NCBI RefSeq assembly: GCF_963853765.1
Contig: NC_088853.1
Location: forward strand, 21,142,001-21,206,000
Length of the DNA: 64,000 nt
Reading direction: 5' to 3'
Source of the DNA: Magallana gigas
Taxonomy: Eukaryota
How positions within the stretch are numbered: the stretch's first letter is position 1; each line of letters opens with the position of its first letter. Under the pieces are notes generated by a model. The model did not search any database and was not told the DNA's origin. It saw only the letters and a program-made list of their open reading frames with translations. A program made the translations under genes and the position numbers. Below are positions 1-63,959 of this stretch, piece after piece.

Positions 1-113
1 TATTCAGAACTGTTTTTTTACCTTGGGTATAAATTAAAACTCTCAATACCAGTGGTGTAAATGAATAAATTAGTCAAAGAGATTAAAGAAAAATAATATG
101 ATAACTTTGTTAA

Positions 114-425
114 GGTGGAATATGGGACACCTCCATGTTGTTGATTGAAATAAACAACAAAATGAAGTCTAATTATACAAGTTAGTTTCTTTCTCAATAT
201 TGTCACCTAACAGAATATCGCAGTGGTTTAGATGGTTACTACAAATATGTACCTCATGATTTCGAATCCCGCTGGGGGTTTTACATTTGTCACCTCTCCA
301 GAAAATTAGTTTCAAAAGCTATTTTGTGGTTAAATAGTGTAGAATTTGAAAATTCTAAACTGGTGAAAGTATTCTAAATTTAATGTGCATTAAAACATTA
401 ATATAGACAGGTGTCGCATACCAAC
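114..425 (+). mobile_element. Small non-autonomous TIR element (MITE), TTAA-flanked, Kolobok-like
   Basis: Left end TTAA|GGTGGAATATGGGACACCT (110-132) is an imperfect inverted repeat of right end AGGTGTCGCATACCAAC|TTCA (409-429). Confidence 0.6.
218..282 (+). other. tRNA-derived (Pol III A/B-box-like) segment inside the MITE
   Basis: CGCAGTGGTTTAGATGG (A-box-like) and TTTCGAATCCCGCTGGGG (B-box/T-arm-like) about 35 nt apart; no full cloverleaf. Confidence 0.45.
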
Positions 426-579
426 TTCATTTAACTGCAAAATTCTAATCTTTGTGAGATTCTTATAGAAGTTAAGTTTCACTGCATAAAACATTTTAAA
501 TTTAATAAGACAGTTGATATTCCTTGATAGTCTTTTTATTTACCTAAAACTATGAAAGTGATATATAAATATACTCTTT

Positions 580-945
580 ATTATTGTTATACTTTCATGT
601 TAAATACTGAAATCTGATTGGTTAAGACACAGTTAATAATATTTACTATTACCCTCAGCGTTAGCAACGCACTTGGCAACGGGTAACATTAAAAAATGTT
701 ACATGCGCGAAAATTATGCGCGTACGGTTCGCTGTAGAATTCACGTTATTCCTATATAAAAGCAGTAAAATTTTCTTAAAAAGACATTCAGTATAACAAA
801 ATAAATAGTGCCTGTTTGGGAGGATAACAGTTGAAATTGACACCCTCGAAAACCATTGTCAACCTCCGCTTCGCGTCGGTTGACAATGGTTTTCTCGGGG
901 TGTCAATTTCAACTGTTACCCTCCCAAACAGGCACTATTTATATA
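580..945. mobile_element. Non-autonomous element with long hairpin (Crypton-like)
   Basis: About 64-bp near-perfect inverted repeat 801-864 / 878-942 around loop TCCGCTTCGCGTC; left part carries CTGATTGG. The family label is recalled from similar invertebrate repeats, not proven. Confidence 0.45.
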
Positions 946-1080
946 CTGTATATAAATACAAATTTCAAAAACCATGTTAAGGAAACCCATTAGATTGAGG
1001 TATTTACATTGTTTAATACATGTACTTACATGTAATAAATAATTGTTACATTTAAACAGATATCATTTCATTTCAGAATC

Positions 1081-3507
1081 ATGTCGGGAGTGAATTTCAT
1101 GAACATTGAAAACCAAATGAAGAGCGATGCAGTCAGAAGATATTTCATTTCCCAAAGACAATTCTGCTTTGACATGCAGTTTTGGAACAACCTTCAGGGG
1201 ATGTCTCATCAACATTTTGAAGATTTTCCAGATATAGAAGAGTTCTCACTGAAATGGCATCCCAATCCAAGTGACAATTATCTGAAGGACATATTTTTAG
1301 ACCATTTTCAGAGAGAAAAACTATCCTATGAAGAATCTTTTCAAAAACTGCCGGCCTGTGTTTTATCATGTGACCACACTTTCAAGGTTTCTGTGAATAT
1401 TGGTTTCATGAACCCTAAAACAAAAACTTGGACAAAGCAGTATGATTCTCTTTTCATGATCTTAAATGAATTTGGTCAAGTCTTAAGTTTTGAATTTGTG
1501 AAAACGACTGCCTTCTCAAGTATTGAAAATCATTTTAGATCTCTTGAAACTTCTTTAGGTAATGCTGTGAAATTAATAGTACTTGACAACTGTTGTCACT
1601 GGAAAAGTAAAATTCAAAAAATTTTTGCAAACGCTGATGTAAAACTAGACATATTTCATGCTGTTCAACGCATAACAAAAAAAGTTTCCAAAAAGAATGA
1701 ATTCTGGAAGGAAATACAAAAAAACTTAAGAGTAGTATTCAGGCAATCTAACGATGTCAAGAAAGAAAGAAAACTATCAACACCAAACTCAGAAATAATC
1801 CTCAATTCCTTTGATAATTTTGTAAGAAAGTGGGAAAAGTTGAAAGACAGTACTGACACTCCCATTTTCTCATCTGATGCACTTAAAGCATGCATGAATC
1901 TCAGAAAACACATAGAGAAAGGTTGTTTATCTGATATTCCAACAGGAACGGGGACCAACAGAAATGAAAAGTTACACCATTTTTTGAATAATTCAGCAAT
2001 GGCAATTGGAAGAATTGGTCCAGAACTTGCAAAAGCTCTTTTGTGCATTCTTTTGTATTTTTGGAACTCTTGCAGAAATCCCGACAATAACTTACATGTA
2101 GTTTATCCAGTGTTTACAAATTTTCATTCCGGGAATGCTAAAAGTATATGTTATTTTTCTACAAACAAAGTTTTGCAACCTAACCCAGAGTTAAATGTTC
2201 AGGAAAAAAAAGAAGAAGAAAAGGGCTTCGTGGAATTAAACAAAACAATGACTTTAGATAAATCCGAGGAAGATGTATATTGGTCAACATTAATGTTTTG
2301 TGAAACATTAAAATCTTTTAAGGCAGTAGATTTGAAAGAAACATCAATGGAGTCACTTTTATGGGCTTCATCAAACCGACAACATTTACTTAAGCCTGTT
2401 ATATCTGCCGAGATTCTTGAGCATTTAACTGTTTTAGGAAATAATGCATCTCGACTAAACATGGTGATTGTAGATACTCCTGAAGATGGAGATTGTCTCT
2501 TTTACTCTGTGGCATATGGCTTACAAAAGATATTTCATAATATTCCGAATTGTTTAAATCAGTATGAGAGATTTCAGAATGTCATCAATGATATCAATGA
2601 ATTGTCATTTTTGTGTAGACAGGTAACAGTAGATGAAATCATGAACAACATTAACTTTTATCAGAGTTTCTTTGATATTAATGATGTTTTTCACAATGTT
2701 GAATGCTATCGAGAGAAAGGTACTTTTGAAGGCAACATGGGTGACATTCTTATATCAGCGCTTTGTAATTTTTTGCGCATTCCAATATGTATAATCACTG
2801 CAAGAGTAGACACTGAGATAATCCTGATACAAAGTAATAGTATGCATATTGTCTCAACACCACTTTTTGTTGCATACAACCACATAGGACCTGGCCATTA
2901 TAGCGCCATGAACGAATGCTCTCAGACTGTTGATTTAAAGGAAGATGCTGAACCAAAATCCAGTGAAAAGAGAGAATGTGTCCAGAGGAAATGTAGATGT
3001 GGAAGATCAAAGCCCAAAATGATGCTTCAAAATCAGAAATTTTGCAGCAAAAGCAGATGCCCATGTCACAAAAATAAATTGGCATGCACAATTGACTGTG
3101 ATTGTGTTAATTGTGAAAACCCTCATGGATCTACACGAGGCAACATAGTAGGTGGACAGAGGGCTACAAGTAGAAAAAGACGAAGAGCCCATATTAACTT
3201 TTTCAACCAAACAGGACATTCTTATCTGGAAAAACAGAAAGAGAAAATTTCCCAAGGAAGATGGTCAAGAGAGGAAACATTTCTTTTACGGAAAATAGCC
3301 ATGAGATCAACAAAAAGAAATAACAGAAAGCCAACAGCCACTTCCCTATGTGCTCAATATAACAAACTGGTAGACACTTTCATTAAAAGAACTGGTTCTT
3401 TGAGCATAAGAAACAAAACTATTCAGCAGGTTCAACAAAAGATTCAGCATATTGTGAAGTCAAATGCTAAATGCGAAACAGTGCAACTGAAAAGTAAATG
3501 CGAGTGA
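1081..3507 (+). CDS. DDE transposase (KDZ/Zisupton- or Mutator-related) fused to OTU-like peptidase, tesmin/TSO1-type CXC and Myb/SANT-like domains; probably the 3' exon of a spliced gene
   Basis: Uninterrupted 808 codons. Transposase motifs CDHTFK (D98), LDNCC (D169), LDIFHAVQRI (D190/H193), GTNRNEKLH (E296). OTU motifs DGDCLFYSV (C472) and GHY (H606). 9-Cys cluster CRC...C...CPC...C...CDC..C. Basic RKRRR. GRWSREETFLL. Splice acceptor TTTCATTTCAG ends at 1076. Confidence 0.8.
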   Translation: MSGVNFMNIENQMKSDAVRRYFISQRQFCFDMQFWNNLQGMSHQHFEDFPDIEEFSLKWHPNPSDNYLKDIFLDHFQREKLSYEESFQKLPACVLSCDHTFKVSVNIGFMNPKTKTWTKQYDSLFMILNEFGQVLSFEFVKTTAFSSIENHFRSLETSLGNAVKLIVLDNCCHWKSKIQKIFANADVKLDIFHAVQRITKKVSKKNEFWKEIQKNLRVVFRQSNDVKKERKLSTPNSEIILNSFDNFVRKWEKLKDSTDTPIFSSDALKACMNLRKHIEKGCLSDIPTGTGTNRNEKLHHFLNNSAMAIGRIGPELAKALLCILLYFWNSCRNPDNNLHVVYPVFTNFHSGNAKSICYFSTNKVLQPNPELNVQEKKEEEKGFVELNKTMTLDKSEEDVYWSTLMFCETLKSFKAVDLKETSMESLLWASSNRQHLLKPVISAEILEHLTVLGNNASRLNMVIVDTPEDGDCLFYSVAYGLQKIFHNIPNCLNQYERFQNVINDINELSFLCRQVTVDEIMNNINFYQSFFDINDVFHNVECYREKGTFEGNMGDILISALCNFLRIPICIITARVDTEIILIQSNSMHIVSTPLFVAYNHIGPGHYSAMNECSQTVDLKEDAEPKSSEKRECVQRKCRCGRSKPKMMLQNQKFCSKSRCPCHKNKLACTIDCDCVNCENPHGSTRGNIVGGQRATSRKRRRAHINFFNQTGHSYLEKQKEKISQGRWSREETFLLRKIAMRSTKRNNRKPTATSLCAQYNKLVDTFIKRTGSLSIRNKTIQQVQQKIQHIVKSNAKCETVQLKSKCE

Positions 3508-4844
3508 CACTGCAGAATGTGAAATACCGGTAGTATGCTAATCTATATAGCTTGTGTATATGATTTGCTGGACTAAAATTCAATGAACATTTGCGTGTAA
3601 TTTGAACTGACCCTAGAGAAATGCTTCATGAGTACATATATTGAGCCAAGCGCTTCAACATGTTTGTTTGTAATATTTATTGCATGGTTTATAACTAAAT
3701 TTCAAATGTGTTTGATCTGATTAAAGTTCTATATAATGAAATTTGTTTATCTTAAGTCTTTATTTGTAATTCAGATAGAAAAAGGTGTTGGTAATTTTTG
3801 CAACTATCATGAAGAATATGTCAAATATTTACATAATATTGAAGTTAATATACAAAAATATCAGAGGTTTCATTTCTGGTTGTCATAGACGGAAGTGCAG
3901 GGTTGCAATAAACTGGAAGTAAAGATTACCGTTATGGCCAAGTTAATAGATATATTCTGTCATCTTTAAAGCCACGCATGGAATAGCACAAAGCATCTTT
4001 TCACTGGCGAGGATAATTCCAACATGTCTCATAACTAATCAATGTACTAAGTGGCTTCTTTCATCATTCAATGTAAAACACATGCTTGAAAACTTATCAT
4101 TCACCCAGTTTAAAAAGCGTTTCTATGCCCTCAATTCAGGTCACACTATTTTTAAAATATGACAAGATTTTGGGATCACAATGGCTTCCAAAGTGGCCTA
4201 CCAAAACAATGAAAAGTAGTATATTTTTTTTAAAAAGTGGTAGATAGGTGACAGGGCCAAGAAGCGGTATACTTCCATGTAAAGCGGAAGAGTAAAGCAT
4301 GTACGGTTTGTGGTCATAAATGTACTATATATGGTTGTAAACAAGCAGCTTGAAATGTGCATGACATGTAATGATATGATACTATACATTACATAGTGTC
4401 TGCTAGAGACTGTCCCTATGAGAGTCATGCATAGAGTGGGTTAAACATTCCAGGGGCATGTCAGAAATGTCCGAAATAAATCAACATATGCAAGAGTTAT
4501 GTAAAATTAAAGAAAAATACCCAAATTTAAATGTTTAAATATATGATTGTTTTGTTTATCAAAATAAATCATATCATAAATTTGTATGTTAATCTGATGG
4601 TTAATTTGTTGACCATCCAACCTCTTAGATTAATCTTGCTATTACATCATGTACTGGTAATAGAGATGAAATACATTAAAGTGCTATTTCTTTCCATTAC
4701 TGAATGTAGAGAAACAATGGCTATTTCTTTTCTATCCAAACTAAGTAAACATTTCTGAATATTGAAAAACATTTTGAGAACAAAGATTTTAATTTGATAA
4801 TTTTTAAATCTCTGACTGTGGGACAGGGCTAAAGTATAATAAAA

Positions 4845-5730
4845 GATTTGGTGCTATTTGTCGCCAACTCTGGGAGAGAGTTTAGGTGTAGGAGATTTGG
4901 TGCTATTTGTCGCTGACTTTTTTTTAAGTTAAGGTATGGGAGATTTGGCGCTATTTGTCGCAGACTTTGGGAGAGAGTTAATGGTGAAGGAGATTTGGCG
5001 CTATTTGTCGCTGACTTTTGAAGAGGGTTTAGGTATGGGAGATTTGGCACTATTTGTCGCTGACTTTTGAAGAGAGTTTAGGTGTAGGAGATTTGGTGCT
5101 ATTTGTCGCTGACTTTTGAAGAGGGTTTAGGTATGGGAGATTTGGTGCTATTTGTCGCTGACTTTTGAAGAGGGTTTAGGTATGGGAGATTTGGCGCTAT
5201 TTGTCGCCAACTTTGGGAGAGAGTTTAGGTGTAGGAGATTTGGTGCAATTTGTCGCTGAATTTTGAAGGTACATGTAGTTTAGGTATGGGAGATTTGGCG
5301 CTATTTGTCGCTGACTTTGGGAAAGAGATTAGGTGTAGGAGATTTGGTGCTGTTTGTCGCTGACTTTTGAAGGTAGTTTAGGTATGGGAGATTTGGCGCT
5401 ATTTGTCGCCAACTTTGGGAGAGTGTTTAGGTGTAGGAGATTTGGTGCTGTTTGTCGCTGACTTTTGAAGAGGGTTTAGGTATGGGAGATTTGGCGCTAT
5501 TTGTCGCCAACTTTGGGAGAGAGTTTAGGTGTAGGAGATTTGGTGCTATTTGTCGCTGACTTTTTTTGAAAGTTAAGGTATGGGAGATTTGGCGCTATTT
5601 GTCGCTGACTTTGGAGGGAGCTGAGGTATAAGAGATTTGGTGCTATTTGTCGCTGAGTTTAGGAGAGATTTTAGGTATGGGAGAATTTGGTGCTATTTGT
5701 TGCTGACTTTTCAAGAGAGTTTATGGAGGC
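4845..5730. repeat. Tandem array of alternating 47/49-bp units
   Basis: About 18 copies of core GGAGATTTGG(C/T)GCTATTTGTCGC with alternating TTTAGGTGTA / TTTAGGTATG variants. Confidence 0.9.
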
Positions 5731-5789
5731 TATCAACCAGCTACCCCCCTTCCCTCTTTTCTTTCGTGACTTCTTACATGAAAGATGAA

Positions 5790-7830
5790 CCAAACTGTAA
5801 TTATGTGTATTTTGATGGGAGTTTTCATTCGGGGGCGGTAATTGTCCGCTCCAAAATCTGTTTTACATTTGAAATTGTGATTATGTAATTTTGTTGGGAG
5901 TGTTGATTCGGGGGTTGTAATTGTCCGCTCCAAAATTTATGTAACGTTTGAAATTGTAATTATGTGTATTTTGATGGGAGTGTTCATTCGGGGGCGGAAA
6001 TTGTCCGCTCAAAAAATTTGTGTAAGGTTTGAAATTGTAATTATGTGTATTTTGATGGGAGTGTTCATTCGGGGGCGGAAATTGTCCGCTCAAAAAATTT
6101 GTGTAATGTTTGAAACTGTAATTATGTGTATTTTGATGGGAGTTTTCATTCGGGGGCGGTAATTGTCCGCTCCAAAATCTGTTTTACATTTGAAATTGTG
6201 ATTATGTAATTTTGATGGGAGTGTTGATTCGGGGGCGGTAATTGTCCGCTCCAAAATCTGTGTTACATTTGAAATTGTGATTATGCGTAATTTTGTTGGG
6301 AGTGTTGATTCGGGGGTTGTAATTGTCCGCTCCAAAATTTATGTAACGTTTGAAATGGTAATTATGTGTATTTTGATGGGAGTGTTCATTCGGGGGCGGT
6401 AATTGTCCGCTCCAAAATTTGTGTAACATTTGAAATTGTAATTATGTGTATTTTGATGGGAGTGTTCATTCGGGGGCGGAAATTGTCCGCTCAAAAAATT
6501 TGTGTAAGGTTTGAAATTGTAATTATGTGTATTTTGATGGGAGTGTTCATTCGGGGGCGGAAATTGTCCGCTCAAAAAATTTGTGTAATGTTTGAAACTG
6601 TAATTATGTGTATTTTGATGGGAGTTTTCATTCGGGGGCGGTAATTGTCCGCTCCAAAATCTGTTTTACATTTGAAATTGTGATTATGTAATTTTGTTGG
6701 GAGTGTTGATTCGGGGGTTGTAATTGTCCGCTCCAAAATTTATGTAACGTTTGAAATTGTAATTATGTGTATTTTGATGGGAGTGTTCATTCGGGGGCGG
6801 AAATTGTCCGCTCAAAAAATTTGTGTAAGGTTTGAAATTGTAATTATGTGTATTTTGATGGGAGTGTTCATTCGGGGGCGGAAATTGTCCGCTCAAAAAA
6901 TTTGTGTAATGTTTGAAACTGTAATTATGTGTATTTTGATGGGAGTTTTCATTCGGGGGCGGTAATTGTCCGCTCCAAAATCTGTTTTACATTTGAAATT
7001 GTGATTATGTAATTTTGATGGGAGTGTTGATTCGGGGGCGGTAATTGTCCGCTCCAAAATCTGTGTTACATTTGAAATTGTGATTATGCGTAATTTTGTT
7101 GGGAGTGTTGATTCGGGGGTTGTAATTGTCCGCTCCAAAATTTATGTAACGTTTGAAATGGTAATTATGTGTATTTTGATGGGAGTGTTCATTCGGGGGC
7201 GGTAATTGTCCGCTCCAAAATCTGTGTTACATTTGAAATTGTGATTATGTGTATTTTGATGGGAGTGTTCATTCGGGGGTGGTAATTGTCCGCTCCAAAA
7301 TTTATGTAACGTTTGAAATGGTAATTATGTGTATTTTGATGGGAGTGTTCATTCGGGGGCGGTAATTGTCCGCTCCAAAATCTGTGTTACATTTGAAATT
7401 GTGATTATATGTAATTTTGTTGGGAGTGTTGATTCGGGGGTGGTAATTGTCCGCTCCAAAATTTGTGTAACATTTGAAATTGTAATCATGTGTATTTTGA
7501 TGGGAGTGTTCATTCGGGGGCGGTAATTGTCCGCTCAGAAATTTATGTAACGTTTGAAATGGTAATTATGTGTATTTTGATGGGAGTGTTCATTCGGGGG
7601 CGGTAATTGTCCGCTCCAAAATCTGTGTTACATTTGAAATTGTGATTATATGTAATTTTGTTGGGAGTGTTGATTCGGGGGTGGTAATTGTCCGCTCCAA
7701 AATTTGTGTAACATTTGAAATTGTAATCATGTGTATTTTGATGGGAGTGTTCATTCGGGGGCGGTAATTGTCCGCTCAAAAATCTGTGTTGCATTTGAAA
7801 TTTTGATTATGTAATTTTGTTGGGAGTGAC
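5790..7830. repeat. Satellite array, ~80-bp monomer, with higher-order repeats
   Basis: About 25 copies of AATTATGTGTATTTTGATGGGAGTGTTCATTCGGGGGCGGTAATTGTCCGCTCCAAAA...TTTGAAATTGT. Identical ORF translations recur at offsets of 803 bp (5881/6684, 5962/6765, 6090/6893) and 241 bp (7329/7570). Confidence 0.93.
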
Positions 7831-9839: not shown

Positions 9840-12800
9840 TAGAGGTGTTTCTCATGGAAATAAGGGGTCTTTCTATTTCATACTCATCTCATAAGAAAAA
9901 GGAAAGAGAGAAGATTGAAATCTCCCTAGTTAATGAAATAACATCCTTAGAATCTCAAGAAATATTTTCTAAATTTGGAGTCTAGGAATTTTCTGAACAA
10001 AACTATCAAAAAAGTAGAACTTGAAGAAGGGGAAATTATATACAAGCAATCGAATATATTGAATCACGTCAAAGAATTTTATGAAAATCTATATACATGT
10101 GCTGATTCAGATTTAATAAATATTAACCATGGAGAAATTATTAAAGGAGAAATTCCTAAGTTAGAACCAGATATATCTAGCTCGTTAGAAGCTGAAACCT
10201 CTGAAAAAGAAGTTCTTGAGGTTCTAAAAAATATGAAAAATAACAAATCACCAGGAAGTGATGGTTTTACAGTTGAATTCTTTAAATTCTTTTGGAAGGA
10301 TCTAAAACTTTTTATCTTAAATGCAATCAACCTTATTTTTCTGAAAAAGGAACTTCCTATTTCCCAGAGATTGGGAATTATATCATGTTTACCAAAAGGT
10401 GACAAACCAAGACAGTATTTGAAAAACTGGAGACCCATCACTCTTCTGAATGTTCTCTATAAGCTTATATCAGGATGTAATAGTTATCGAATAAAGTCTA
10501 CACTAGACTATATTATATCTGATACACAAAAAGGCTTTCTTAAAGGAAGATATATTGGAGAAAATACTAGAATTATTTATGATTTAATGTCATTCACTGA
10601 AAATGAAAACGTACCAGGTCTTTTAGTTCTTATTGACTTTGAGAAAGCCTACGATTCTGTTTCATGGTCCTTTATATACAAAGCTTTAGAATACTTTGGA
10701 TTTGGAAATAATATTATAAATTGGATAAAGATTCTCAACAAAGATTTTAAGGCTTCTGTTTTACAATGTGGCTTCCTGTCAGAACAGTTCAAAATCCAAA
10801 GAGGATGCAGACATGGTGACCCAGTAGCTCCTTACTTATTTTTGATATGTGCAGAAATTTTAGCTATTCTCATAAAACAAAACTTTGATATTAGAGTTAT
10901 AATTGTTAATGGCAATGAACATAAGATTTCTCAGTATGCAGATGATACTTTGCTTATCTTAGATGGTTCACCAATGTCACGTTTCACAGCTCTTGATACT
11001 TTAGAAATTTTTTTCACACATTTCAGGTTTGAAGATAAACAGCTCTAAAACAAAAATTGTATGGATAGGTTCTTAAACATTTTCTAATGAAGTTTTTCAC
11101 CATTCACGTTGGAAACTCGATTGGGGCTCCACTTCTTTTAATTTACTTGGAATAGAATTTTCTGTTGACTTAGATAAAATGACATCACTAAATTATAACA
11201 AACCACTGCCAAATGTTTTTTCTCTAATTCAACAATGGAGGAGGAGAATTTTAACTCCCATTGGTCGCATCACTGTTGAAAAAAGTTTGATTATTCCAAA
11301 ACTTAACCACCTGTTTATTTCACTTCCAAATCCAATACAAGATGTCATTCTATCTCTAAGTAAGAGCCTGTTCGAATTCATTTGGAATTCAAAGTGTGAT
11401 AAAGTTAAGAGAGAAATTGTTACTCTCGATTACCTAAAGGGTAGTTTAAAAATGGTTAACATTTCTAATTTCATGGCATCTCTTAAATGTTCATGGATTA
11501 AGAAATTAACTCAAGGCTACAAACCATGGATGGACTTTTTTTTTATCAATAAATGGTAATGATTTTGCAAAAAAACTTATTGATTTTGGTGATGATTTTC
11601 TATCATGCATGGTTGTTCAAAGAAACAATATTTTTTGGCAAGATGTTTTTAATTCTTGGCTCTGCTATACTAAGAAAATGATTAAAAGCTCATTAAATAC
11701 CAAGAATGTTTTCAATATTCCTGTGTGGTACAACCCAAATATAAAAATTGCATGTTAATATGTATTTATCAAAGATTGGTATATGAAAGGGGTCAAAATC
11801 ATTGGTGATCTTTTGAATGAAAATGGAAACATATTGTCAAGAATAGATTTTACTGAAAGATTCCATTTTTCATATATACCTCCAATGTTATATAATAGTG
11901 TTATATGTGCAATATCAAAATACTTGACATATTTGTCTATTGATAAGTCTACTTTGAAGAGAGACTTCACTATATTTATGCCATTTTATTATGAGTTTAT
12001 TTTTTTGAAAGAAAAAGTAACAAATCATATATACATATGTTTAACCTTAAATGATTGTGTACCTACAGCTATCAACAAATGGAATGCTGAGCTATGTGAT
12101 ATTTTGCCAAATGATCTCTGTGTACATGATGTGTTTAAAATATGTTTTAGAACTACCAATGATTCAACTATTAATTGGTTACAATATATAATTCTCCATA
12201 GAATTCTTCCTGTTAAATATTATCTTAAGAAAATCAGAATTACTACCTCTGACTGCTGTACTTTCTGTAACGATATGCCTGAACCTATAAAACATGTTTT
12301 TGCAACTTGCAAGAAAATCCAGCCTCAATAGTATGCACTTAGTATACTTATATATGAGAAATGCAACAAAAATGTTAACTTTGATGTTTGTAATGTATTA
12401 TTTGGTGTTTATCCCCTTGTTTGGGAGAACAGAATTCTAAACTTTGTAATCCTATATACAAAACAATATATATTTTTATGTTTAAAACAAAGTAAGACAC
12501 CACATTTTTTAGGGCTTTTACACTATTTAAATCAAAGATACAAGACTGAAAAGTATATTTATATTCAGAAATCAGAAATTGATGAATTTGAAAAAGCATG
12601 GTCTCCTTGGATTGATTTTATTAATCATCTGGCAGTTTAGAATTAACATGTGTACAATAATGCATCAATTTAATATTTTTATGTTTTTTGTTTTTTGGTA
12701 TTCTGTTTTTTTTTTCTTTCTTTGGTTTGTTTGTCTGGGTTTTTTTTCACATGGATTGCAGTTTTACTGCATAGGCATAACTATCACAAGCAACTACCCA

Positions 12801-61470: not shown

Positions 61471-62698
61471 ATGGTTTTTAGCTTAGAGGATTTTTTGAAA
61501 TCTCCTGACGCAAGCAGGCTTCAATATCTGACAAAAGATGAACTGTTTTTGTTTGTAACAAAGTTTGGCTTGAATGTGAAACGTAGTTCTAGGAAAGCAG
61601 AAATAAGAAATGTTGTTGTGCAGTATCTGGTAGAAGAAGAGATTTTAGAGTCAAGTGCTATGTCATTAGTTGTTGTCGTAGAAAAGCCTGTGAAAAAAGA
61701 TTATGAATTTGAGTTGCAATTTAAACAATTAGAGATACAGCAAGAAAGAGAAAGACATGCATGTGAAAGGGAAAGATTTGAACGTGAGAGAGTATGAACA
61801 AGAGAAAAGCGAGAGAGAACATGAGTATGCATTAACAATGAAGCAATTAGAATTTGACACTCAAAAATTGAAACGAGAAGAAGCTGAGGCAAATGCTAGA
61901 TCTAAACCTGACTTTGATGTTGCAAAAAATATAACACTTGTTCCTAGATTTCAAGAGAAAGACGTTGACAAGTATTTTATTCATTTTGAGAAAGTGGCAC
62001 AAAATCTAAATTGGCCTAAAGAAATATGGCCACTTCTGCTTCAAAGTACATTTATCGGAAAAGCTCGTGAAGTTTATGGTGCATTGTCACTGCACCAAAG
62101 TTCAGATTATGATATTATCAAAGAGAATGTCTTAAAAGCATATGAACTTGTGCCAGAAGCTTAAAGACAAAAGTTTCGCAACTATAAGAAATTCAATGAA
62201 CAGACTCGTGTCGAATTTTCTTGAGAAAAACAGAATTTGTTTGAAAGATGGTGCTCATCTAAGCATGTGGGTTCAAATTTTGAAAAGTTAAAGCAAATTA
62301 TTTTGATTGAAGAATTAAAAAATTGCATTCATCCAGAAATTAGAACATATTTAGATGAACAGAAAGTTGAAAACTTGGAGCAGGCTGCTACTGCAGCTGA
62401 TGATTATGCACTAACTCATAAAGGGTCATTTACAAAACAGAGAAATTCAAATAATGACTATTCTCGTGGGCGACCAGACAATTCGCAGGTAACACTTGGT
62501 TCGAAATCAACTTCATCCGAGCAAGTGAAAGTCACTGACAAGAATGACATGACTACCAAGTCAAGTCTTATATGTAATTATTGTAAGAGAAAAGGCCATA
62601 TTAAATCAGAATGTTGGGCATTACAGGGAAAGGAGTTAAATTCTGATAAGTTTGTCTGTAGCAAGTTTGAGGGAGGAATTTATACCATTTGTGTTTGA
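61471..62698 (+). pseudogene. gag with SCAN-like capsid region and CCHC knuckle, frameshifted
   Basis: MVFSLEDFL..., coiled coil, VPRFQEKDVDKYFIHFEKVA, GKAREVY, AYELVPEA, CNYCKRKGHIKSEC; broken into three ORFs. Confidence 0.85.
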
Positions 62699-63959
62699 TG
62701 GTTCTGTGTCTTTAGATGGTACTGACTTGCATCCTATTAAAATTTTGAAGGACACAGGTGCTTTTCAGTCTTTGTTTCTAGAGGGCGTGCTGCCACTGTC
62801 TGAGAAGTCATATACTGGTTCCGATGTGTTGATTCAGGGTGTAGAGTTGGGATTTGTGAAAGTTCCTCTTCATGAGATAGGTTTGAGATCAGATTTAGTC
62901 TCTGGAAATGTAGTAGATGGGGTTAGACCTACTTTACCTGTTAAGGGTGTATCTCTTCTGTTAGGAAATGATTTGGCAGGGGGCAAGATTGTTCCTGACC
63001 CAGTTGTTTGTAATAGGCCTAGTATCATAGGGGAGGAGGAGAATACAGAGTTATTTCCTTCTTGTGCTGTCACTAGAGCCATGGCTAAGAAACTTAGAGA
63101 TCCTGATCTGAAGGTAAGTCGGGAAAAGTTAGGTATGGGAAATGACTTAAATATTGGTCTAAATGAGACATTTATGTCCAATTTGTTAAAATCAGAAAGT
63201 CATACTTCCTCTGAGAACCAACATCAGCATGCATCTAAGGATGATGTGTTGGGTTTACATGAAATGTTTGATAAGACACCTCTTACTAGGGATAGGCTGA
63301 TATCTGAGCAAGAATCAGATTTAGAAAGTAAAGGTCTAACTATCCAGGTCTTGTCTCCTGAGGAGGCAGAAAAGGTCCCTATTTGTTATAATAAAAATCA
63401 AGGTGTTCTAATGAGAAAATGGCGTCCCCGTGATGCTCCTGTAGATCATGAGTGGCAAGTGCACCATCAGATAGTAGTACCTAGGGCATACAGACAAACA
63501 GTCATAGGTCTCGCTCATGACACGCCTATGTCAGGTCACTTGGGCATTAAGAAAACTTACTGTAGGGTTTTGGCTCATTTCTTTTGGCCTAAGATGAGAA
63601 AGGATGTAGTTGAGTACTGTAGGTCCTGTCATGTGTGCCAAGTCGTAGGGAAGCCCAATCAAATGATCCCTCCTGCTCCTTTAAATCCAATCCCTGCTTT
63701 TGAGGAACCCTTCACCAAGGTCATAATAGACTGTGTAGGCCCATTACCCAAAACTAAGGTAGGTAATCAGTACCTGTTGACAATAATGTGTGCATCTACA
63801 CGATTCCCTGAAGCAATTCCTTTGCGCAATATTAAGTCAAGAACAATTGTGAATGCTTTGACAAAGTTTTTCACCAATGTAGGGCTACCCCTGTCAGTAC
63901 AGTCAGATCAAGGCTCTAACTTTACATCCCAAGTCTTAAAACAAGTCATGTGTGAGTAA
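62652..63959 (+). pseudogene. pol 5' part: aspartic protease and integrase
   Basis: ILKDTGAFQSL, LLGNDL, HDTPMSGHLG...CRSCHVC, IIDCVGPLP, QSDQGSNF; premature stop at 63957-63959. Confidence 0.85.

Follow-up and report, generated by a model that had tools for sequence, protein, structure and literature searches.

Does a long open reading frame (ORF) with transposase-like catalytic residues in the genome of the oyster Magallana gigas belong to a mobile element, and if so, to which kind? The ORF comprises 808 codons at positions 1081-3507 (+) of a 64,000-nucleotide stretch of DNA (RefSeq assembly GCF_963853765.1, contig NC_088853.1, positions 21,142,001 to 21,206,000), which was analysed as a whole and is called the window here. 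The initial annotation, made from the sequence of the window, described it as an intact fusion of a DDE transposase with OTU, CXC and Myb domains. It proposed either a young member of a poorly described DDE family that brings its own deubiquitinase or a domesticated transposase gene. Our analyses indicate that the ORF is very probably the second exon of the only transposase gene in a structurally complete cut-and-paste DNA transposon that is potentially autonomous. This element is Mutator-like, has a low copy number, and combines an unusual transposase with minisatellite arms.

Negative window positions lie upstream of the window start, in the upstream stretch L011 (L011 9483 corresponds to window -517). 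C1, C3, C4, C5, C6 and C8 denote chromosomes of the 564-Mb oyster assembly. Residue numbers (aa) count within the 808-codon ORF, that is, within exon 2 only.

The transposase gene lies inside a 15-kb element

The element is 15,049 bp long (C1:21132743-21147791, from L011 743 to window 5791), and its terminal inverted repeats (TIRs) lie 8.7 kb upstream and 2.3 kb downstream of the ORF. The left TIR (30 bp; C1:21132743-21132772, outside the window) and the right TIR (30 bp, GG terminus; window 5762-5791, minus strand) agree in 28 of their 30 positions. Their sequences are GGCTAATCTTTCATGTAAGAAGTCACGAAA at the left end and, as the reverse complement, GGTTCATCTTTCATGTAAGAAGTCACGAAA at the right end. 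A perfect 8-bp target site duplication (TSD), AAACTGTA, is found on both sides of the element, with its left copy at L011 735-742 and its right copy at window 5792-5799 (+). The insertion target is a host 80/241-bp satellite that occupies window 5792-7828 (+) on the right and, in the same orientation, L011 103-742 on the left. The satellite consensus holds a single AAATTGTA at the insertion point; the flanks therefore rebuild an empty site, one continuous satellite unit. This satellite has an 80-bp unit with a 241/321-bp higher-order period.

Two subterminal arrays of 49-bp repeats lie inside the TIRs, inverted relative to each other: 31.6 copies on the left (L011 824-2372) and 17.8 copies on the right (window 4844-5723, +). 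Both arrays have a common core of about 30 nt (AAAGTCAGCGACAAA..CCAAATCTCC), similar to the inner TIR motif AAGTCACGAAA. The initial annotation had reported no TIRs around the ORF. That statement holds for the near flanks, where an inverted-repeat scan extending about 4 kb from the gene returned weak AT-rich pairs only, but not farther out, where the real TIRs, the left one beyond the window, were found by comparing two loci and their satellites.

Related copies tie the gene to the element ends

Protein and profile searches of the 564-Mb assembly detected two transposase loci only, the one described here and a second at C4:48.979-48.981 Mb. The C4 copy is disrupted by 10 in-frame stops and 15 or more frameshifting indels, while this copy has none. 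The C1 and C4 loci are collinear from window -7353 to +4237, and both enter a 49-bp array on the right.

The ends can be traced further. A 25-nt TIR core occurs eight times in 564 Mb (none in the reversed control): as the C1 pair, at the right end of the C4 copy, as a pair on C5, and as single ends on C6, C4 and C3. Between the C5 ends (C5:13926075/13931237) lies a copy shortened to 5.15 kb by internal deletion, and it is flanked by its own perfect 8-bp TSD, GAGGATCG. Copies lose homology exactly at the GG termini, and the flanks beyond are unrelated. The internal deletion derivatives on C5 and C6 have retained the left end as well as the promoter region plus 65 nt from the start of exon 1 (window -1280 to -452), joined to the right subterminal region and TIR, and this make-up ties the gene to these ends. 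Together, the deletion derivative with its TSD, the decayed copy and the solo ends document past transposition. Copy-number and flank alignment, a check that the initial annotation had proposed, thus yielded both the termini and the 8-bp TSD.

Could the two loci instead be a segmental duplication of a dead transposase relic, with arrays and apparent TIRs that come from another element? We consider this very unlikely. Such a duplication would fit the collinearity of C1 and C4 over more than 11 kb, unrelated repeats included, and the fact that C1:10.55 Mb, C4:48.948 Mb and C6:37.06 Mb hold the DUF3987 part (see below) but no transposase. However, the C5 and C6 derivatives join the promoter and the start of exon 1 to the right subterminal region and TIR, the C4 copy stops at the same right TIR and continues into an unrelated flank, and a distant relative also has its gene between inverted arrays.

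The other alternative, raised by the initial annotation, is a domesticated transposase gene that is kept for a cellular function and is no longer mobile. Some observations would suit it: the single intact copy in 564 Mb, the presence of an intron in the gene, the lack of TIRs within about 3-4 kb of the gene, and a ratio of nonsynonymous to synonymous substitution rates (dN/dS) of 0.39 relative to the decayed paralogue. That ratio, another check that had been proposed, was obtained between the two oyster copies, C1 and C4 (891 codons, dS 0.09), and as a sign of selection it also counts in favor of the transposon reading. Against domestication, the gene is enclosed by matched TIRs and, within a satellite, by a perfect 8-bp TSD; other parts of the genome contain a deletion derivative and solo ends; the relatives are multicopy elements of the same layout; and an intron, like dN/dS below 1, is usual for autonomous DNA transposons. 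On this evidence domestication is highly improbable. The TIRs, the 8-bp TSDs, the deletion derivative and the solo ends support instead the proposed member of a poorly described DDE family with its own deubiquitinase. The epithet "young" remains conjectural; other copies differ from this one by 4-20% in DNA.

A two-exon gene encodes the transposase

The initial annotation described the ORF as an intact fusion protein preceded by a splice acceptor. The acceptor (tttcag/A at window 1076/1077) is judged real because a matching upstream exon exists, and the ORF accordingly represents exon 2 only. Exon 2 (window 1077-3507, +) consists of the split-codon base, one isoleucine codon, the 808-codon ORF and the stop. 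Exon 1 has 171 codons plus 2 nt and lies outside the window (window -517 to -3); its open frame runs from an ATG at L011 9483 to a donor, AG/GTATAT, at window -3/-2. Between the exons is a 1079-nt GT..AG intron that starts at window -2 and whose 3' 1076 nt occupy window 1-1076 (+). The predicted splice junction joins the end of exon 1, ACTCAAAG, to AATCATG, and the two exons yield a product of about 980 aa.

Comparison with relatives revealed the missing part. Relatives have about 150-250 extra N-terminal residues, and the ORF begins midway through a conserved block. A tblastn search with 28 relatives placed the missing N-terminal part at L011 9588-9995, just upstream of the window, and the spacing of conserved residues over the exon 1/exon 2 junction equals that of intronless relatives. 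The protein of one relative, P0201 (977 aa, 43-51% identical), spans exon 1, one codon and exon 2 with no gap. Its RNA-like Logan contig, L037, is identical to the genomic contig L039 except for a 4.85-kb GT..AG stretch that it lacks at exactly the same split codon; the position and phase of the intron are therefore conserved, and the intron is removed in the P0201 species. No spliced form was found among the 15 listed members of the Logan cluster of P0169 (118 members). In the oyster, the two-exon gene model is a prediction from sequence, with splicing evidence coming from the relative. A conserved intron in the P0021 family was also considered and rejected: that gene is intronless, and its 808-aa call merely reflects a late ATG. 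Prokaryote-style gene callers cut the transposase gene at its intron.

Exon 1 and the first part of exon 2 encode the N-terminal region, which matches Pfam DUF6729 in relatives and is a predicted DUF6729-type cysteine/histidine region. It is preceded by a signal-peptide-like hydrophobic stretch, MKVLAVFAIFLHLTSA (L011:9483-9560, window -517 to -440), an odd start for a nuclear DDE enzyme. Among full-length family members, 18 of 25 have a 15-aa window with a mean Kyte-Doolittle value above 2.0 within the first 40 residues. The relatives with a hydrophobic start include P0005, P0008, P0010, P0014-P0016, P0018, P0019, P0022, P0023, P0025, P0047, P0141 and P0152.

Fragments in the P0169 cluster that are 90-99.5% identical to exon 2 are present in many public sequencing runs (e.g., L036 from ERR13913529 and L038 from SRR2015337). 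One Logan fragment is a 758-aa open piece with 99.5% identity to exon 2. Hence either the element or alleles of it occur widely within the species or among close relatives.

The catalytic core resembles IS256 and Mutator transposases

We built AlphaFold2 models from family alignments in two halves, aa 1-440 (mean pLDDT 81.5, above 90 over aa 1-340) and aa 441-808 (mean pLDDT 84.9). The first half contains the DDE catalytic core, which adopts an RNase H-like fold in the model (aa 90-335; window 1348-2085, +) and has structural matches to known enzymes. In the modelled core D98 ends beta1, D169 follows beta4, D190xxH193 follows beta5, and E296 sits on a helix behind an all-helical insertion. These are the residues named in the initial annotation, and all are present and conserved: in an alignment of 65 family sequences, D98, D169 and D190 never vary, and conservation is at least 90% for H193 and E296. 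The motifs of the protein are conserved across more than 100 relatives and are therefore real features of the family rather than chance.

A sequence search of the PDB with the DDE profile gave no meaningful match, and structure comparison was therefore needed. The closest solved structure is the IS256-family transposase ISCth4, with a Foldseek E value of 2e-7 and a VIA Z score of 16.7 (252 residues aligned, root-mean-square deviation 3.1, model residues 1-335). The Foldseek runners-up were the P element (E 9e-5) and Hermes (E 4e-3), and generic integrase cores reached VIA Z scores of about 11-11.6, about 5 Z units below ISCth4. Among Atlas predicted structures, the nearest named clusters were Transposase_mut (PF00872) and MULE (PF10551), the latter named for Mutator-like elements. 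At the sequence level, Pfam ISL3 and Mutator matches over aa 140-236 fall just below the curated cut-offs, and a Pfam scan found no match to PF10551 in the query or in 32 family members. The core is thus, as judged from the modelled structure, nearest to IS256/Mutator, while its sequence scores below the curated MULE and Transposase_mut cut-offs.

A different placement is also conceivable, in which the element is not Mutator-like but belongs to Zisupton/KDZ, a group that can carry peptidases, or to an unnamed superfamily. In favor of this, Zisupton TSDs measure 8 bp (PMC12730594), most MULEs generate TSDs of 9-11 bp (PMC6446971 Table 1), no family member attains the Pfam MULE cut-off, and the hhalign comparison with oyster MULEs is weak. 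Nevertheless, the KDZ model PF18758 matched none of the 32 relatives at E<=0.01 and did not match the query at E<=1. A search of the oyster genome with the same model was also blank, but its control was silent as well, so it carries little weight. The best structural neighbors, solved and predicted, are IS256/Mutator enzymes, well above other DDE enzymes; the sole sequence-level hints are ISL3 and Mutator; and hhalign pairs the second Asp and the DxxH/CxxH motif of the query and the oyster MULEs correctly. We therefore regard a placement away from Mutator as rather unlikely, and we describe the element as Mutator-like.

An OTU peptidase domain and putative DNA-binding modules follow the core

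The domains of the protein are ordered as follows: the hydrophobic N-terminus, the DUF6729-type region, the DDE core, an OTU domain, a CXC domain, a basic stretch and a Myb/SANT-like tail. The OTU-type cysteine peptidase domain covers aa 441-615 (window 2401-2925, +), with C472 and H606 as the catalytic pair. Pfam OTU matches aa 468-601 at 22.8 bits, against a cut-off of 23.3, and matches 17 of the 32 relatives. OTUD3 was recovered by profile (E 1e-9) and by Foldseek (E 3.6e-7), and VIA aligned the model to Otu2 (Z 19.5), OTUD1 (17.8) and OTUD3 (17.1). D469, G470, C472, F474, H606 and Y607 are nearly invariant in the family alignments; across the 48 sequences used for the OTU and CXC counts, C472 is kept in 46 and H606 in 47. 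The model indicates an OTU fold with catalytic Cys and His, and peptidase activity is predicted.

The MSL2-type CXC domain (aa 635-683; window 2983-3129, +) scores 28 bits with PF16682, above the cut-off of 26.7, and aligns to PDB 2lua; a profile comparison gave E 6.5e-5. Its nine Cys residues (638, 640, 655, 660, 662, 669, 673, 675 and 678) are nearly invariant, each kept in 43-47 of the 48 sequences. A basic RKRRR stretch (aa 698-702; window 3172-3186, +) follows in a low-confidence linker of the model and may represent a nuclear localisation signal.

The last 85 residues plausibly adopt a Myb/SANT-like fold. In the model, this C-terminal module (aa 723-808; window 3247-3504, +) forms three helices at model residues 290-307, 313-331 and 341-367 (pLDDT 86-98). 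W728 and E732, both common in the family, lie in the first of them. VIA matched the tail to the DNA-binding domain of ARR1 (Z 7.5), LUX (7.3) and PHR2 (7.2), followed by Chd1 SANT-SLIDE (6.6), GT-1 (6.6) and RAD Myb (6.2). Z scores of 6-7.5 to GARP, Myb, SANT and trihelix proteins are in the range of common small helical folds, and no Pfam match for a Myb/SANT tail was found in the query or the 32 relatives.

The features listed in the initial annotation, D-G-D-C472...H606, the nine-Cys CXC cluster, RKRRR and the WSREET helix, are all present. The two segments that it had singled out for modelling, aa 95-305 and aa 455-615, take RNase H-like and OTU folds, respectively. Its DDE, OTU and CXC domain calls hold, with the CXC being of MSL2 type, and the Myb-like call is plausible.

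Relatives with the same domain order occur in other animals

A word search identified 70 relatives, many of which align with 27-31% identity over more than 90% of the query, and a profile search identified 64 at E<=1e-10. The named relatives are from corals, octocorals, hydrozoans and a sponge, with Hydractinia, Clytia, Oculina, Paramuricea and Dendronephthya among the cnidarians. The domain order recurs family-wide, in cnidarians, the sponge and other assemblies. Thus the order, which the initial annotation could not assign to a named family, is not unique to this locus; moreover, an OTU-bearing MULE is already on record (see below).

Some relatives are also arranged like the oyster element. 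A cluster formed at 90% identity contains 27 members, some full-length (927 aa) and some broken, which are spread over many large contigs from two assemblies. Four loci of this cluster align at about 95% identity over 4.4-5.4 kb, beyond which their flanks differ. In this cluster the gene lies between kilobase-long inverted tandem arrays, with long perfect TIRs that start with GG, and one copy has an 8-bp TSD, CTAATAAT, with a GG terminus.

The inverted arrays of a distant relative (L030:2443-7680, + and L030:10978-14250, -; ENA ERZ26167708) are open for 1745 and 1089 codons. These frames match Pfam Collagen with E values of 7e-235 and 1e-152; transposon repeat arms can therefore be mis-annotated as collagen genes.

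Comparison with described transposons

We compared the element with the transposon groups that share one or more of its features. With MULE/MuDR and IS256 elements (ISCth4, PDB 6xg8/6xgx) it has in common an all-helical insertion before the catalytic Glu, a D/CxxH motif after the second Asp, and TIRs. TSDs of 8-9 bp are produced by IS256 and some MULEs (PMC6446971 Table 1). In MULEs TSDs are mostly 9-11 bp, with 8 bp for one group (PMC6446971 Table 1), whereas TSDs of 8 bp were found for two oyster insertions (AAACTGTA and GAGGATCG) and for the distant relative (CTAATAAT). The oyster protein further differs from MULE transposases in that it has no SWIM, FLYWCH or MuDR DNA-binding domain and instead, like its family, has an N-terminal DUF6729 region and a C-terminal OTU, MSL2-type CXC and Myb-like block.

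An OTU-bearing MULE is already known: the Repbase entry MuDR-6_HM from Hydra, which Dupeyron et al. 2019 (PMC6446971 Table 1) list as a MULE that includes an "Ovarian Tumour" domain and for which a length of 5227 bp, but neither TIRs nor a TSD, is given (PMC6446971). Both elements combine a Mutator-class transposase with OTU, MuDR-6_HM is from a hydrozoan, and named relatives of the oyster protein are likewise cnidarian. In the oyster element, by contrast, the TIRs and the TSD are defined, and minisatellite arms are present. Compared by description only, the two may belong to the same lineage; a motif search for the family signatures in the supplementary alignments of PMC6446971 found nothing.

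A canonical OTU-bearing MULE also exists in the same genome (C4:12302458-12305790; L050:1458-4790, minus). It matches PF10551 at 60 bits and OTU at 39.6 bits, carries a C2H2 finger, and recurs as near-identical copies with open frames of 986-1111 aa (C8:11.06 Mb, C4:29.22 Mb and C4:54.88 Mb). Several copies are 99-100% identical, and this MULE may therefore be active. Like the element described here, it has OTU and a DDE transposase in one open frame, but its order is OTU, C2H2 finger and MULE DDE, with OTU at the N-terminus. It is without CXC, Myb-like tail and DUF6729, and is remotely related (hhalign 37%). The combination of OTU with a Mutator-type transposase is therefore a recurrent pairing, within which the element described here stands apart by its domain order and partners.

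Three further groups share single features. Rehavkus (reported from arthropods and annelids) has a minisatellite beside its TIR and a Mutator-like DDE, as here, but only its 3' TIR is preceded by a minisatellite, its transposase contains a PHD finger, and its TSD is 9 bp long (PMC6446971). The oyster element has inverted arrays at both ends and 8-bp TSDs, and no PHD finger was matched in the query or the 32 relatives. Zisupton/KDZ elements share the 8-bp TSD (PMC12730594), a large size with possible accessory enzymes, and cysteine-rich CxC-type modules, but PF18758 does not match and the nearest folds of the oyster DDE are Mutator/IS256. Ginger1 with OTU (PMC2836005) is likewise a DNA transposon whose protein includes an OTU peptidase; its DDE, however, is Gypsy-integrase-like, and the oyster DDE aligns to integrase cores at Z of about 11 versus 16.7 to ISCth4.

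Our literature search found no paper that mentions DUF6729 or PF20499, no link between OTU and MuDR beyond Ginger, Helitron and PMC6446971 Table 1, and no link between the MSL2 CXC and a transposase. The lineage may sit inside MULE proper or beside it.

Other features of the element and the window

The 3' non-coding interior of the element (window 3508-4843, +) includes an old interspersed repeat (3893-4307), about 74% identical to at least 400 candidate loci, and a subterminal stretch common to the non-autonomous copies (4498-4843). Fragments of a DUF3987-type gene (primase/helicase-associated domain) are also inside the element (L011 2949-4676, minus; window -7051 to -5324) and could represent a passenger, a nested element or a second gene. 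Similar fragments occur without the transposase at C1:10550593-10552627, C4:48947846-48949365 and C6:37056088-37057779.

The intron sequence is confined to the two gene copies, with the exception of a young, high-copy, palindromic insertion that resembles a miniature inverted-repeat transposable element (MITE; window 582-943), where the C4 copy has a 362-bp gap. The MITE is about 365 bp long with arms of 45 nt that are 98% complementary. Genome-wide there are 2782 candidate loci; those that were scored show 94-99% identity and are often arranged in tandem or nested pairs. The MITE looks very young and very abundant.

Elsewhere in the window, retroelement ORFs include an RVT_1 frame of 357 aa at 9975-11048 and a 435-aa frame with integrase zinc-binding and rve domains at 62652-63959. 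An 879-codon ORF at 38133-40772, a reverse-transcriptase fragment with RVT_1 and the start of RNase H, contradicts the statement that the transposase ORF is the only long undamaged one in the window.

Proposed mechanism and significance

How might such a transposase work? The CXC domain, the Myb-like tail and the N-terminal region would bind the TIR and the repeated 49-bp core that resembles its inner motif, and the 49-bp arrays would in that case be putative repeated binding sites. The DDE core would then cut the element out and reinsert it across an 8-bp stagger. OTU would strip ubiquitin off its target, be it chromatin, a host factor or the transposase.

Several points weigh against a complete, potentially autonomous and Mutator-like element. 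The profile search detected, genome-wide, just this intact transposase and a decayed one, and no copy in the assembly is more than 96% identical to this one; recent activity is therefore only conjectural. The apparent passengers (the DUF3987 remnants, the old repeat and the intron MITE) may possibly impair the element. Expression and splicing in the oyster remain predicted, as do, more conjecturally, the DNA-binding roles and the OTU substrate. The classification is affected by the PF00872 score (16.4 bits against a cut-off of 21) and by the weak hhalign comparison with canonical oyster MULEs (37% probability, E 3.6e-4). Finally, the residue two positions after the OTU His is Ser608, where 33 of the 48 sequences have Asp and 6 have Ser. 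The "full catalytic set" of the initial annotation was thus slightly generous in this respect, although the DDE triad, C472 and H606 are in place.

A broader reading may be put forward tentatively, as one that we hold to be possible rather than probable: the family could be an undescribed group of metazoan DNA transposons, sister to or outside the canonical MULEs, with OTU as a family-wide device. Its proposed marks are a transposase of DUF6729-DDE-OTU-MSL2-type CXC-Myb-like order with a signal-peptide-like N-terminus, GG termini, 8-bp TSDs and inverted minisatellite arms of kilobase length. If this is true, the minisatellite arms may be multivalent binding sites, and OTU would act on host chromatin or on a ubiquitin-based defence.

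The oyster element provides the lineage with a complete annotated reference copy, including ends, TSD, gene model and non-autonomous partner. Previously, all that could be seen of the lineage were DUF6729 and "uncharacterized protein" entries in data from cnidarians, sponges, molluscs and fish, and possibly one Repbase entry that lacks ends. The reference copy is also relevant to annotation, as repeat arms are read as "collagen" ORFs in relatives and the gene is split at its intron. Its transposase unites a DDE nuclease, an OTU peptidase and the CXC type by which MSL2 reads DNA. With the 5.15-kb derivative as a substrate, the role of a transposon-borne deubiquitinase, and the putative role of the 49-bp arms as its landing pads, become testable.

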